64,000 nt of DNA from Trichoplax adhaerens. Lineage: Eukaryota; Animalia; Placozoa. The DNA lies in the NCBI RefSeq assembly GCF_000150275.1, contig NW_002060943.1, positions 11,780,878-11,844,877 on the forward strand. The letters run 5' to 3'. The translations under genes were made by a program, and so were the position numbers. Of this stretch, positions 25,381 to 33,993 are shown one piece after another. The first letter of the stretch is position 1; every line of letters begins with the position of its first letter. Below the pieces are notes generated by a model. It had not been told where the DNA came from and made no database searches. It saw only the letters and a program-made list of their open reading frames with translations.

Positions 25381-25476
25381 TTCCTAGAAATAGTACGTGG
25401 GCGCTATCTCATCCTATTAGCTACCTACCGTGCTACTACCATTAGCTGAAATCATTACACGATCATATATAAAAAG
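25381..25476 (+). promoter_or_regulatory. Proximal promoter of beta-trefoil gene A: GAS (STAT) site, HRE-like core, TATA
   Basis: TTCCTAGAA 25381-25389; TACGTG ~25394-25399; TATATAAAAAG 25466-25476; ATG at 25526. Confidence 0.5.
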
Positions 25477-25525
25477 GGAACAGCTTCTATTTGTTCAAGT
25501 CTGCTATCATTTTAGTACTTTAATA

Positions 25526-27580
25526 ATGGATCGCACAAGTGAGGATAGAAAGCGCTTCTTGATAGAAATAAATATTGAAGATTCTGGTGATGTTGTTGAT
25601 TGTCCAAATGAGAAGGAAGACCTTAAGCAATACACTTATCAGTTATACTGCAAACGAGCTAATGGATATTTAAGCGTTGAATCATGCCCAACTGACGATT
25701 GCGAATCATTCAAAGTAGTTTGTAAAGAAAATCGTGGAGCTGGTTACGGTAAGATGCATTTTAAAAACACTCTATTACATTGATACTATGAGCAGTTAAG
25801 TGACATCGTTTCGATCATTTGACCTATATCTACGTTTTAAGTTTATTAATCTTATAAAAATGACTTTTACAGAGCTAGCTTTTTTTCTCGCATTTAATTC
25901 TCTCATCGTCTTATCTGTTGAATTTTGTACATTTACCTTTTAGTTGATTCTATAAAATATTAGTCAATGCTAACCTTCTACCATAAGCTAAGTGATACCG
26001 CCGCTTAATCTATTAATTTTTGTGATTTTTTACTTTGATTATTCTTATGAAGTCATCCAAGACAAGGATAATTAAGTTTCTCAGACTTGAGTAATGTATC
26101 ATTGAGTTACTGAGGTATATGCACCAAATTAGGATATTTAAACCGTAAATTTTGCTTTCCGGTTCGAATTTCTTAGACACAAAGATTTTCATCCAATTTT
26201 CTGCACCTTAATGTGATCTTTGTAACATCGATTTTCATAAAATTAACTTCTTTATCAATTAGTATCGCATTTTACATTTTTATTGATGCATTACCTTATT
26301 GTGTTCAATAAAGCAAACGTACAGAAACGTTAACTTTCTTAGTCTAATGCTAAACAAAACCTAGTTAAATGAATTTTATAACATCATCTGTCCTGTACCC
26401 TAGTTTAATCCTATGAAGTGATTTTACTAAGTGCAAATACCAACTTTCAAAGATCTAGATATTACTTGTTTTATCCGATTTTCCATATCTTCGGCTTTTA
26501 ATCTCGTCGATGCCAATTAAGTAACGCTAGTAATATTCGCTAGTCCCTGTACACATAATATGCATAGTAATAATTTTCACAGGTAGTTACACAATACTGC
26601 TTCCAGAGTTTGATATTAAAGAAAATTAAATTTATTTGATGTAAATTATCATAAAATAGTCTTGCTGTGTAGAGAGATGAAAAAATTAATTATCCAGTTA
26701 CCGATATTTAATAGTATAAAGTCTAACAAAATGATATTTTAGGTAAGCTTGAACGATTTTTATATTATTACGTGGCCAGGGTATAAATAAAATCTCAAAT
26801 AAAATATAACCTAGCAAGCTAGATTAATTTTGATTACTATCCCTTATACTCACAACTACCAAGATCATTTCAAAATCACCGATGCGAAATCTCTATCTAA
26901 CACGAGTGTAAATGTTCTTCGATTGGGGTATAAGATTGGGGAAGACATCGGATATTTTCTCGCCGGCAAGTTAGCAGATGGAAAGGACGCTCAAAGTGTT
27001 AAATATGATACATCAATTCGTATGGAGGAGGTTGAACTGCTTTTTGTGGTACGTTAATAGGCTCGAATAATTTTTAAATCTTATCAAATTCTTGATGCAT
27101 CTAAATAAAATTTTATACTGTAATTGTAAATGATATCGTTGAATGCAGAATCACGCTGTAATATCTCTGGGTGATTCTTGATATGATTACTCACATGATC
27201 ACGTTGTGATCATTCTATAATACTTTTATTAAATTAAATTTCTATACTATTTCCTGACCGAACTGTTAAAAATTTTTTAGTCTAAAAAATTCTACAAGAA
27301 GGAAGAGAAATTTCTCTCGAATTATTTACCACTGATGGTCAAATTTGTTGATGGTGACGTATGTCTATTTTTAGAACGTTCCGAAAATTATGGTACAGAA
27401 ACTAAATGTGCCATTTCAGTAACTTCTAGAGATAAATTTACTTTAGATTACCTAGATTGCGTTCACAGCGTACCCTACGAATCTTCATGCCATCCTGTAC
27501 TTTCTAAAGACCCAAGTTTTATTTCTAGTTCTAGCACTGAAAATCATACTAAAATCGAGCACCCAAATATTAATGCTTAA
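25526..27580 (+). CDS. Leaderless FGF/IL-1-like beta-trefoil protein A, ~235 aa, exons 25526-25748, 26864-27048, 27281-27580
   Basis: Three ORF-track pieces join in frame via GT-AG introns (phase 1 then phase 0). Motifs: YQLYCKRANGYLSV (FGF strand 1-2 type), D|HFKI, GYFLAGKLADGK, CLFLERSENY (cf. FGF1 CLFLERLEENHYN). No signal peptide. Gene structure is solid; the fold assignment is inferred. Confidence 0.65.
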
Positions 27581-29189
27581 GCCTTTTATAATTGAGTAAT
27601 CTTAAGTTTAGTAATATTTGCGTTGCATTTAATTATAGCTTTCATTTACGCTACTATCTTTTCGCTAAATATAATTGAATGAGTATAATTTTAATTTTAT
27701 TACTTTTTACTGACTATTGAAGATTGCTACTGCACTATGATGGTACTTACTTATCTCTGCTTCATAAATAATCCAATTTACTGACCTGTTAATTGTTTGA
27801 CGTTAAATCAAAATTATTAATTTTAAATTTTTATAGATATAAATCTAGCTAATAATAGTAATAATTGGTATCATCAAACGTCCAGAAGTTTATTACTAAT
27901 TTCTTGATTGGCTCATTAAGCCTGTATTGAGAAGAATAAAATATTCGATATTGTTAGGGACGATGATATTCAAATTTAAAATGGATCTGTTTACTTAAAT
28001 ACTATTTTAAGTATAATGCATTTGCCAGACCTGATTACTATTGAACTAAGGAAATTGAAATTTTATTCCATTTCGTCGACATGACGAATATTAATCCTCA
28101 TAAATCAAATTTAACTAGATTAGAATGATTCCAGATACTTACGCGTTATTCATTAATGTGCCATGTGCATTATTGCAATAAAACAAGAAACGGCGTTCAT
28201 TGGCCTAATTTTCGCAATTTTTCCTTGCTACCTTTTTATGCATCTGTAACAAAACCTGTTCTGCTAATGGTAGTTAGAGTGTAGATCACACAAGTAATTT
28301 TATATAGCAGATTTTATTACTGATTCTCTATCGATTGAGATACTACATAATATACAACAAGCTCTGACAGACAAGGAAAACTTCCTAAGACGGCAGATCT
28401 TAGAAAAGAAGGACTAAGAACAACATTAACAGAAAAGCGTAGCTGCTTAAATACGTTATCTAACTTGTTTACCACATAACAATTGCGAAAAACATCACTT
28501 AACACTTACAAAACTTAGTATGAGAATAAAATTGTATAATTAGTATCATTCTTTGAAGTTGAAATCAACATACTTGAATTATCACAAACATTACTTATAT
28601 ACTCGTATACCTATTATTGACAACAGCCGTAGATTTTGGTATTATTTTTAAGCTATATCTAATTCACTTCTACATAACATGTTGGCAACAGTAGCTTATC
28701 TAGTAGCTTCACTACAGTATCACGGACTTCTAGAGCCTCTAGGTGCTCCAGCATTTCGTGAACATGCCATGTAAGTGAAAATGGAAATATATTGAATATA
28801 AGTAATTTACTAGTAGGATATTAAAATCGATGAGGTTGCATCGGGTAATATAGAATACTGGTTTATCTTAACACTGTAATAAAATTTGATAAAAAATGAA
28901 CTTAAACACCGGTACGATCAACTATTTTCTGATTTGGATATCGATATTTGATCATATTCAGGAAGCAAACGTATTTTAGCGATACAGATTTGGATATAAT
29001 CATCTAAGCTGGCTAAATAACATATTAATTACAATAGAAGCAGAGTAAAGCAGAATATATAATTTTTCTAATACGGCTTCAGATCCTTGTTAAACTGGAT
29101 AATTTTGCTTAGATATGATTGGATGAAGTACATTTAAGATGAGGATTTCATTCGTGCTAGTTTACGTTTCTACTAGTATAGTATTGACT

Positions 29190-29497
29190 CTATTACGGCC
29201 AAAACCAGTAATGCGGCCGTTACCGGTATAGGATTCCCAGTTTCATACTAATTCCTGTTAAATAACTTACATGAAATGTTTGTAAATATGTAATAGTGAA
29301 AGGCTACTATAACGATGTATTTAGCATGCAAGTACATATATCCTATTGTCCGTAACAAGTTTTTCAGCTTTTACTACAGACCTTATTTTGCAGTCTTTTG
29401 CCCCCATTTTAAGGCTTGCCTACATAAAAGATAAATCGCGAAAACTTACAGAATTTACTATGAAATTGGCCGTAACAACTCTACTGGTATAGTAATA
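29190..29497. mobile_element. Degraded inverted-repeat (MITE-like) element
   Basis: Left TTACGGCCAA...CCAGTTTCATACTAATTCCTGTTA versus reverse complement of the right arm TTACGGCCAATTTCATAGTAAATTCTGTAA; imperfect match. Confidence 0.35.
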
Positions 29498-32400
29498 AGC
29501 AGTCGATTGATATTGGATAAGCAGTATATGATTGATTGCCAATCATTTCCATTATTGCTAGATTAGATTAAAGATTGTATGAACATTTGTTTAAATATAC
29601 TAACTACTTCTTGCTAGTTACCAGTATACCATTGGCTATTTAATATTGATTCTACAATGTAATAGAACAAGACCGAGACATAGTAAATGTGTACTTAACA
29701 TTCATATTTCGATGCAACTAATCATTGACGTCGTTAATACCAGATTGTGCTAGGTAAAACTAGATAGCGTAGTTTTTATTTAATTAATGTTATACACTTG
29801 TACTCAATATTTAGAGCATGGTTAACTGTTTGCTCTTCCGGAATTTTCACTATTTCCATATTAATTTTAATTTTATTTAGAGCTCAATATGACTATTTCG
29901 TTATTTTGTACGTTGGTTAGTTTTATTATATTGTGAACCGTAATGTAAGAGGTATTTATTAATAATTTTACCAGACCTTTAACTCTTATCCTTGCTCTTT
30001 TTTGATAAATTATTACCATATAAGGAAATAATCTATAATGATCACATTATCATTTTACAATTTCAATGGAATTGATTGTATTTATAGACTAGTTGACAAA
30101 GCAAATTAGGGATACTAATTGAATGCTGTCTGTGAGGTTGATAGAGAGAACTAGACAATAGCGGCTTATTTTATTCCATTTTACAAATTGTAATATTGAA
30201 TGAATATAATTTAGCGATTGTCAGTCAATCAACAGGTTTATTATTGCTACAACACAATTTGCGTATAAGAAATAAAAGTAAAACGGAACGGAAATATGTA
30301 ATAAACAAGCTAAGCGAAATGATATTTAAACCATCTCCCTGATACGAATAAATACCCCTATACTGTGCAGCAACAATGATAAGACAATAGTTAGACGATG
30401 GGTTATATTCAATCATTTATCAACCAAAATTATTTCCTGACCCTGCCCAGAGATGATTAGCAATACAATATATTTTAATTATTGAAATTTAATGTATAGA
30501 ATGATTTTCTACTTACTTACTCCAAATTTAATATCGTTCAAATTCTTAGTATCTAAATTTAGAAATGTATGATGAAATAACATTAGAAGCAGCGTTAGTG
30601 TAACGTTAATTTATTTATTATATTTCAGCTCGAATTCAGTGTATATAATAATGGATTCACATGGATACATTACTCATTCCGTTAGTGAGCTAATGCTTCG
30701 TTGATGATCTGTAATAGTAGGACCCTCGGTTTAGTAGATATGGACTGATAATTAACATTTTGGCTTAGATAAATTTTTGTTAGCCAAGTTAAAGTTAGAT
30801 TTTCAATGATTGTACAAAGTGCAGGTATCTAATTTTTTACAGTTCACATAACTTATATGCTATGATTCCTTAGTAGTTTACATTTCGCAAAAATTACTGC
30901 GATAATTCATAATTATGAGCTTTAATAATAAATTTATAATATCGGTTGTGACAGTTATTGATCTGCAAGGAAGTAGACGTATAGTGTGTATTGATATCTC
31001 GAAACTATTAAAATTTCGAGCTAGCTTGTTGCATATTGTATAATCGTCTACTTCATTTATTGCTTTAAGAATATTTCCGTCTTCAGAAATCCATCAGAAA
31101 ATTAGTCCTAAGACTCTTAGCGTGCCTACCTATAATATGCGCGCAATTAAAGTGATTAGTTGCTATAGCTCAAAATAACAAAAATATAGCCATCCACATC
31201 ATATAAGTAAGTGATGATGGTTAACAATAGTCATTTAAGCCAGTAATTACGATGCCGATTTTTAATTTAATGTCATAGTAGAATAATTTACAGTTAAATT
31301 ATCATTTGTTGTTTGCTAGTAATTCTCTTCTATTGTTTGCTAGGTGAATAGCTTATTATTTAGTTTAAGAATTAAAAATAATGATGATATTAGTCATCAA
31401 CTTAGAATCGATGGCCTAGTATAGCGTATTTGTACACTGTACTATCGTAGTCGATTTATAAATTATAGCGGCATGAGAGACACTTCTAAAGCATAATAAT
31501 TATATAATTAATCATAAAAGATTAATAGCAGTTGTTATTGTCGCGATCTAATCTAGGGAATGTGAAGGAGTACGCTGTGGGGTCAGTGTAAATCAAAACC
31601 ATTAATTCCTTTTTGTTTCCCCTTTCATTGCTAGATATTGTTATTAGACACCAGGAAAATGTGTCGTACTGACTTACCTTTTTATCTTTAATTAAATATC
31701 ATAGCCGATAAGATTATACAAGAAAAGAATTAAAGATATAGCTCGAATTGTTTTTCTAAGGTAACTACAGGGTGTGTCTACTTAAATCTTACGGAAACAA
31801 CTAGTGCATAAGTCATGCAGTTAATGCCTTTCTGCTTGATAAACATTTGATCAAAGTAGAAATTGCTGTAATCATGACATCATTGTAACGGAGTCATTTT
31901 GGCGGAATAACCAAACATATTTTCGGTTTATTTTTCACCTTTTGACAAAAATGATGATAACGTTAAATTTTATGATCAAACATGACACAGCTTTATTGAC
32001 ATTTATTTCCATCCATATCATTAGTTATTAAGTTATAGAGTGCCAAAGTTGGTATATTTGCACATTCTTTTATTTCTCTACTTGCATAAGTATGTACGCT
32101 ATTAATTTAGGGATGGTTCTACTTACGCTCCAACCTCTATCCTATCTATCACGAATAAGATAAATAGTTTACTTTATTTTACTATGGATAGTATAAACTA
32201 GAATAATATGCTCGTATATTAGAGATACGGTATCATGCTAAGTCCTAAATATCTATCAGTCTTAATAATTATTGGCGTATGCCAGTTAATGCACCATACT
32301 AAATTAATAAGATTTCAATCTATCATATTTATTTCAGATTCTAATAACAAAACAAATATAATTTGACTACTTTGTAGCCTATAAAAAACCAATGATTGAT

Positions 32401-32643
32401 GATCTAGTTAGTAGTTAGTATACGAATATATGTACAAATTTACCGGTTTCCACGAAATAAAATGTATTATTTGAGTTACAATTTACAAGGCCGTAAATCA
32501 TTACGGCATTACAGATAGAAAGTTTTTTCAGCATGAAAATTATTTAATTTTCTACAAGTTCGAGAAAGGCGGCTACATTGTTATCAGTCGTATTTACAGC
32601 TATATATATATACGTGTGCTAGAATCTTTTGTGACTTATTTTT

Positions 32644-33763
32644 TCACAAGATATGATCGTTGATTCTTTTTATTAAAACCAAGGCTAGTAGTGTTTCGGG
32701 TGGGTTATATTGAATACTGGGATTTATTAATGTAATATTTCCGTCGTGATTGAAACAGAGTGCTTGCAATTCACTTTGTTTATCGACAATCTCCAGCATA
32801 GCTGTTGTAGTCGTTTCGTTTGGATGATACAGTGGGATGATAAATTGCCATTTGAGATCTTGAGCATTGGTGATTTCACTGGTAAGATTGTGAAGGTAAT
32901 TGAACATATTCAGACGGTCTAGATCGTTATCCAACTTTGTATCCTTGAATGAACAATAATGTGTTTAGAATACATTTATGGTCTTGTATCAAAACTTTCA
33001 CTAATCACGAAGCGGTACTGTATCACTCCAAATTTTCGAACTTACCAAGAATATCGCTTTAAAATTAGCTTGATCTTTTATTTTAGTAATGCCTAGAAGT
33101 GCTTTTGGTATATAAGCTCCTTTTTGCTTGGACATTAGGAGTATGATTGATTTATTCTTATTTATCTTTCGAATTTCAAAATGACCTGAAAGAAAATGAT
33201 TACGATATAATTCATATGGTAGTCTTTATCTATAGTTTTCAATGTTTTTATTATCATCTACTGATAAAGGAGTTATTAAGTATTATTAACGAGCTGATTA
33301 AAAACGGAATTGTTTTTAATATATTATTAAGATGACAGTCATTTTAAGGGATATTCTATTTCGAGTTATTGGAAATGATTACTAGCTATCTATCAAACAA
33401 AATAGTTAATCATAAATCCTTACTAAAATCCTCTATATTCACATCTACTTCGTCGAGACCAGATGGAAAGGCTGCTAGATGGGCGGTAAGATTTCCAACT
33501 TGAATGGTTTGATTACTGCATGCAATGTAGTAATCTCTAGCCCTTAGAGCTAGCACATCTTGGATAAGATCTAAAATGTAATTAATATGATAACTTAAGA
33601 TCAATATGAATTCTTCCGTTGTAAATTATAATTGATACTTTGATTAATGAACATTCTTGTGTATAGTCAGGGTGCCTTCCTTAAGCAAATATAGAGTTTC
33701 TCTTACACTTTGGTCGTTTGCATACCGTTACACTTATTACTTACCATTTTTTGCAGGAGCCAT
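32644..33763 (-). CDS. Leaderless FGF/IL-1-like beta-trefoil protein B, ~201 aa, exons 33745-33763, 33424-33570, 33046-33185, 32644-32943
   Basis: Strong start context gcgATGG. Four exons join in one 606-nt frame via GT-AG introns (phases 1,1,0): MAPAKND|LIQDVLALRARDYYIACSNQTIQV...DEVDVNIEDFS|HFEIRKINKNKSIILL...AIFL|DTKL...ALCFNHDGNITL...PETLLALV. Alternating beta-strand pattern; LCFNHDG resembles the FGF YLCMNxxG hairpin. Confidence 0.6.
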
Positions 33764-33934
33764 CGCGCTTGTAATAGGTTTAGTAGAGTAAACTTGATGT
33801 AGCTTGAGAGTAACGTCTTGAATAACGGGAAGTTAGGCAGGAAGATATCTACTGTCCTGTATACAACACGATTCTAAATTATCTGGAGCTCAATAATTAG
33901 AACTAATGTCAATTAAAATGATGGCACAGGCCGA

Positions 33935-33993
33935 CTTATATACACTTGGGCCTCTATTCATGCATGTAATTATCAATTGTTCTTTTCTCGGAA
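33935..33993 (-). promoter_or_regulatory. Proximal promoter of beta-trefoil gene B: TATA and GAS (STAT) site
   Basis: Minus-strand TATATAAG 33942-33935; TTCTCGGAA 33985-33993; no upstream ATG seen in the leader from ~33900 to the start at 33763. Confidence 0.5.

Follow-up and report, generated by a model that had tools for sequence, protein, structure and literature searches.

Among the described proteins, the beta-trefoil ligands and lectins come closest to the products of the locus analyzed here. FGF1 and FGF2 (PF00167) are small and leaderless, and canonical FGF genes consist of three coding exons with introns of phases 1 and then 0 and a middle exon of about 104 nucleotides (nt). Members of the interleukin-1 (IL-1) family (PF00340) are leaderless as well, comprise about 150-200 amino acids and are encoded in a tandem array. 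Many cytoplasmic or lectin-type trefoils likewise have no signal peptide, and some represent lineage-specific expansions. With these systems a pair of convergent genes of Trichoplax adhaerens, termed A and B, was compared. The genes lie in a window of 64,000 nt (G000:C1414:11780878-11844877; positions below refer to this window) within the 105.6-Mb assembly of 1414 contigs. A first-pass annotation had described them as unannotated-looking candidate members of one divergent family of leaderless FGF/IL-1-type beta-trefoils. The pair was found to consist of genuine, previously annotated placozoan orphan genes. Gene A is transcribed and spliced, gene B belongs to a family of paralogues, both products are leaderless, and no sequence link of either to FGF or IL-1 was detected. 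The balance of evidence tips slightly towards A and B encoding lineage-specific, leaderless, trefoil-type binding proteins.

Gene A was obtained by joining and translating open reading frame fragments of the plus strand, which yielded three coding exons with a 708-nt open frame for 235 amino acids. Exon 1 (25526-25748) starts with the ATG and ends at a phase-1 donor, exon 2 (26864-27048, 185 nt) starts with (D)HFKI and ends in phase 0, and exon 3 (27281-27580) holds CLFLER and the TAA stop codon. A 3' untranslated region follows (27581-28203), with an AATAAA near 28178. Gene B is located on the minus strand and consists of four coding exons that total 606 nt and encode 201 amino acids. Exon 1 (33763-33745, 19 nt) encodes MAPAKN and ends in phase 1, and exon 2 (33570-33424, 147 nt), which is matched by a paralogue exon, has phase 1 at both ends. 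Exon 3 (33185-33046, 140 nt) starts with (S)HFEI, ends in phase 0 and has a collinear paralogue match, and exon 4 (32943-32644) includes the stop codon, LCFNHDG and the family motif F..DG.v.L.N....P.E. All introns are of the GT..AG type (two of two in A, three of three in B), with phases 1 and 0 in A and 1, 1 and 0 in B. In both genes a phase-1 intron is positioned immediately 5' of the HFxI sequence (between D and HFKI in A, between S and HFEI in B), and the next intron is of phase 0. A distance of 5,063 bp separates the two stop codons. Thus the first-pass annotation was right about two intact tail-to-tail genes of 235 and 201 amino acids, about their intron placement and about the motifs it quoted, as YQLYCKRANGYL, GYFLA and CLFLER are present in the translation of A and LCFNHDG in that of B.

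Both genes had, however, already been annotated. A search of exon 3 against 1.84 billion cluster representatives showed that the model of gene A is identical to TRIADDRAFT_52712 (XP_002108340.1, P0001; 235 amino acids). The product of gene B was reached through weak six-frame matches of its last exon on another contig (C1389), which gave an exon profile, then annotated paralogues and a second profile. This second profile retrieved a 201-residue protein of Trichoplax sp. H2 (P0007), and the same cluster contains TRIADDRAFT_52713 (XP_002109062.1, P0009), which is identical to the gene B model and maps exactly onto its four exons. Both database entries carry the label "uncharacterized protein". 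The orthologues in Trichoplax sp. H2, TrispH2_004078 and TrispH2_004079, are neighbours as well. No mention of either gene was found in the literature by locus tags and UniProt identifiers, and a search for contigs encoding P0001 returned no record.

Splicing of gene A was confirmed by RNA, as the first-pass annotation had proposed. Both junctions (25748/26864 and 27048/27281) are present in spliced contigs from three runs (X7, X15 and X19) belonging to three studies. The contigs start at 25513-25529 and extend at the 3' side to about 28203, where the longest spliced contig (run X7) ends some 20 nt beyond the AATAAA. Run X5 was left out as support, as its contigs read through the donor of exon 1 and sit inside intron 1, which is the appearance of DNA or unspliced material. 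Between the contig starts and position 25526 there is no ATG. At the 5' end of the longest contig, 24 bases beyond 25519 do not align, and an acceptor-like ttttag (25510-25515) adjoins this position; adapter sequence occurs elsewhere among the contigs of the same run. A TATA-like tatataaaaa (25466-25475) precedes the contig starts by about 40-50 nt, and for this reason a simple start site is more likely. Separately, contigs of X7 and X19 were seen that match only 25406-25461 (or 25406-25444) and have long unrelated sequence on both sides. Kyte-Doolittle hydropathy revealed no hydrophobic N-terminus or membrane span in A, B or three paralogues of B. The maxima for A and B were at most 1.07 for a 12-residue window within the first 50 amino acids and at most 1.22 for a 19-residue window anywhere. 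This agrees with the earlier statement that neither protein has a signal peptide, insofar as simple hydropathy shows no signal-like stretch.

A profile of the last exon of gene B identified seven places in the genome, namely B itself, five loci on contig C1389 and one on contig C977. The loci on C1389 (at about 149.5, 156.1, 164.8, 170.3 and 175.3 kb) are all on the minus strand and arranged head-to-tail at a spacing of 5-9 kb, the copy at about 164.8 kb being the most divergent of the array. C977:412-660 and C1389:156123-156371 gave equal scores and share the same internal TAG; C977, which is a short contig, appears to duplicate part of C1389 in the assembly. Pieces resembling exons 2 and 3 are found collinearly upstream of the last exons. 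The annotated paralogues P0004 and P0006 have the structure of B: their first exon measures 19 nt, and their introns are of phases 1, 1 and 0. Members of the family are 28-40% identical and have in common Y..S, GL.E, F.F, KI..y..IF, an amphipathic stretch, W.F and F..DG.v.L.N....P.E. No relatives beyond Trichoplax were found in the clustered protein collection, in a search that needs shared five-residue words and could miss distant kin. The B family is placozoan-only and comprises six genes in which the intron phases 1, 1 and 0 are conserved; five of these genes form a tandem array on a different scaffold. Positions 14-46 of its profile (window about 33430-33530, minus strand) resemble the C-terminal half of the v-Src SH2 domain, GGFYI....L..L.AYY....GL, with E 1.5, and one paralogue reads KKFLVRS. 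This likeness is probably due to chance, because a whole SH2 domain would not fit.

The trefoil assignment is based mainly on the predicted structure of gene B. An AlphaFold model computed from a ten-row paralogue alignment reached a predicted local distance difference test (pLDDT) score of 44.7 and a predicted template modelling (pTM) score of 0.44, which is low confidence. It contains six strands, a 16-residue helix (residues 112-127) and two further strands. When PDB was searched with this model by Foldseek, nothing matched at E up to 0.001. In an exhaustive structural alignment about 45 of the 50 best representatives were beta-trefoils, which covered residues of about 10-195 with 105-145 residues aligned. 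They included ENF-binding protein, CdtA, clostridial Hcc, BinAB, the Agaricus mannose-binding protein and a silkworm lipoprotein, and furthermore ricin-type lectins, Kunitz inhibitors, FRG1, IL-1alpha, IL-33 and designed trefoils. A second list, taken from Foldseek, consisted of trefoils in 50 of 50 cases and included IL-1beta aligned end to end. The silkworm lipoprotein, the Agaricus lectin and clostridial Hcc scored Z 4.1-4.8 with 110-148 residues aligned; for IL-1beta the values were Z 3.8-4.1 and 128-137 residues at a root-mean-square deviation of 4.3-4.6. Differences in Z below 1 count as ties. Thus the best matches of the gene B model are lectin, toxin and storage-protein trefoils, an outcome that the first-pass annotation had named as refuting its proposal, but IL-1beta is within 1 Z unit and tied with them, so that the candidates cannot be ranked by the model. 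For gene A, a model without alignment reached a pLDDT of 32.6 and was unusable. Its structural matches form a mixed non-trefoil list of propeller blades and small sheets that share only a local four-strand meander. Because the equally poor model of gene A gave such a mixed list, the trefoil signal is a property of the gene B model and not of poor models in general. Gene B therefore probably folds as a beta-trefoil, to judge from the prediction.

A trefoil fold is possible for gene A too. Those of its protein language-model neighbours that have a Pfam family all belong to the trefoil clan (RicinB_lectin_2, MIR, I66, fascin and CDtoxinA), at borderline scores of 0.90-0.92. The cytoplasmic and lectin-type trefoils, among them ricin-B-like proteins, the Agaricus mannose-binding protein, fascin/FRG1, the C-domain of the silkworm 30K lipoprotein and clostridial Hcc, are accordingly represented both among the top matches of the B model and among the named neighbours of A. 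They differ from A and B in that no sequence similarity is detectable. The Pfam scan described below gave no match of A or of the B-family proteins to the ricin-B families PF00652 and PF14200. Of the earlier proposal of leaderless FGF/IL-1 beta-trefoils, the fold is thus weakly favored by the model of B and the neighbours of A, while the assignment to a family and a function gains no support.

According to the explanation we lean towards, the locus would comprise two independent, convergently transcribed genes for small beta-rich proteins without a secretion signal, both restricted to placozoans. Gene B is one of six paralogues with a four-exon structure common to the mapped members, and its product is most likely a beta-trefoil with an inserted amphipathic helix. 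By analogy with cytoplasmic ricin-type, fascin-type or storage-protein trefoils, the proteins may act as binding modules, either within the cell or after unconventional release, and may have a role in defence or in interaction with the environment. Such roles are common among tandemly expanded, lineage-specific and fast-evolving families. Several points weigh against this explanation. All Z scores of gene B are 3.5-4.8, below the level that would signify more than a common arrangement, and both AlphaFold models, of A and of B, are of low confidence (pLDDT 32.6 and 44.7). Ten feature matches of the same clan are also obtained for one third of shuffled proteins, and a score of at least 0.9 for the first match arises by chance in 4-10%. 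The ESM Atlas returned no usable match for gene B, self-alignment of the B profile detected no internal three-fold repeat, and the QxW sugar-binding motif is absent. In addition, an extra upstream exon of gene A, although less likely, might be read from the 24 unaligned bases and the ttttag.

For gene A an alternative has to be considered, namely that it is a young or weakly constrained orphan whose product has no conserved fold or function, so that its FGF-like and trefoil-like hints arose by chance. No relatives of A were found beyond placozoans, neither among 1.84 billion cluster representatives (with exon 3) nor among 5.8 billion clustered proteins (with the full-length sequence), and within its own genome each of the three exons finds only itself. 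The failure of AlphaFold to yield a structure is in line with this alternative, as is the variation between strains. Compared with Trichoplax sp. H2, the protein shows three residue differences and a lost stop codon, which extends it to 240 amino acids; two residues distinguish the gene B protein from its orthologue in H2. Compared with run X15, gene A has six nonsynonymous differences and one synonymous difference as well as the same stop loss, which adds five residues, the TAA at 27578-27580 reading AAA. From these sequences, the position of the stop codon is shifted between close lineages. The ratio of nonsynonymous to synonymous differences per site (pN/pS) is about 1.6. Neutrality fits the differences (P = 0.56) and an omega of 0.2 is unlikely (P = 0.03), but the counts are tiny. 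Against an unconstrained orphan, the open frame and every splice site are kept across several strains, and three studies show expression of the gene. Moreover, its protein has nine cysteines and a strand-like pattern, and wherever a feature neighbour has a Pfam family, this is a trefoil family. We regard an orphan without conserved fold or function as unlikely, although it is the best surviving of the alternatives. Gene A is best described as a single-copy, cysteine-rich and fast-changing gene, whose product may also have a trefoil-like fold.

The original proposal, in which A and B are divergent FGF/IL-1-type beta-trefoil cytokines that are released unconventionally and act on receptors, has some features in its favor. 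Both proteins are leaderless, the gene B model is trefoil-like and superposes on the whole of IL-1beta, at a Z less than 1 unit from that of the best matches, and the tandem array of the B family resembles the vertebrate IL-1 cluster. Gene A has LYCK..GYL, GYFLA and CLFLER, which look like motifs of FGF1 and FGF2 and stand in the FGF order, as well as intron phases 1 then 0. However, the interpretation fails every sequence test. Pfam was scanned at E up to 10 with the three exons of A, the three long exons of B, full-length P0001 and the B-family proteins P0007, P0004, P0005 and P0006, and there was no match to PF00167, PF00340 or any trefoil family. Matches to Sina_TRAF (E 0.075), YcxB (E 0.12) and PH_ULP (E 0.046) were at chance level and were discarded. 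A six-frame scan of the whole genome gave no match to the FGF profile PF00167, for which a 24-bit cut-off was applied. It gave none to PF00340 either, a weak blank as the control genomes were silent too. The PDB sequence matches at E up to 10 of the exons of A, full-length A, the last exon of B and the B-family profile include no FGF or IL-1 chain. Those obtained (fetuin-B, CAND1, titin, CD2, NKG2-D, SHMT, mannose-6-phosphate receptor, v-Src SH2 and trans-sialidase) are at chance level. The PROSITE-type FGF signature pattern around the C-x-F-x-E strand is unmatched in A, B and the paralogues, even in its short core, and C-L-F-L-E-R alone is what gene A has in common with this region. The IL-1 signature pattern is unmatched in the same proteins. 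Furthermore, A and B are not one family, because comparison of A with the B family by hhalign gave a probability of 0.15%.

CLFLER is a six-residue identity with what we take to be the human FGF1 sequence. Such an identity is worth an estimated 18-19 bits, and thousands are expected in a search of PDB size. The motif is variable between strains, as another strain of Trichoplax has CLFLEH (R169H). Relative to FGF2, gene A would have to accommodate about 9, 6 and 37 additional residues between the motifs that look alike, the 37 being located between the DG motif and CLFLER. The middle exon of gene A measures 185 nt as opposed to 104 nt in FGF genes, and gene B has four exons, the third of 140 nt. 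Phases 1 then 0 are estimated to occur by chance in about one gene in seven. The gene B model differs from IL-1 in its predicted helix at residues 112-127, and lectin, toxin and storage trefoils score equal to or better than IL-1beta. FGF/FGFR signalling is held to date from the cnidarian-bilaterian ancestor, and no FGFR is reported in placozoans (PMC7260276, citing Bertrand et al. 2014). These animals also lack FGFR docking proteins (PMC7260276). In a survey of Trichoplax sp. H2, none of 16 TIR-domain proteins had a transmembrane segment (PMC6321704), and therefore no IL-1-receptor-like protein is present among them. As placozoans are reported to lack such receptors, A and B are not likely to be ligands of an FGF- or IL-1-type receptor.

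The FGF/IL-1 interpretation is thus not supported, and we consider it improbable that A and B are receptor-acting cytokines of this type. It is marginally less probable still that the six-gene B family, perhaps with A, represents placozoan leaderless beta-trefoils that share ancestry with IL-1 and/or FGF and act as released signals. If true, the presence of a relative of FGF or IL-1 in placozoans would change where two major signalling families of animals are taken to originate. Shared ancestry would mean that such ligands arose earlier than the cnidarian-bilaterian ancestor and earlier than the receptors known for them, raising the question what they bound before these receptors existed. As improbable as such a shared ancestry is a divergent mannose-6-phosphate-receptor-homology (P-type lectin) domain instead of a trefoil in gene A: the cation-independent mannose-6-phosphate receptor is its best PDB sequence match by phmmer, with two collinear stretches (residues 36-72 and 154-203, window 25631-25741 and 27332-27481) that include VDGDxC...C...DC with three aligned cysteines, and the spacing of the four C-terminal cysteines is like that of such domains, but E is 0.28 overall and 64-68 per stretch, no Pfam receptor-homology family matches, the domains act in the secretory pathway whereas A is leaderless, its feature neighbours point to trefoils, and the resemblance is probably due to chance.

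What stands is a placozoan-only tandem family of leaderless, probably trefoil-shaped proteins and, adjoining one of its members, a fast-changing, cysteine-rich single-copy gene. A and the B family belong to no Pfam family. It would be reasonable to determine their structures and to map their expression by cell type in Trichoplax. The locus also illustrates that short motif identities and matching intron phases are insufficient to call FGF homology.

Between the two genes, and belonging to neither, a dispersed repeat of about 360 bp (28241-28600) is located just past the 3' end of gene A. It has at least 40 copies in the genome with 78-88% identity and defined ends. An Rfam search of the region between genes A and B, including this repeat, gave no match. 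The RNA contigs that align to the repeat are very deep, mismatched and loose-ended.

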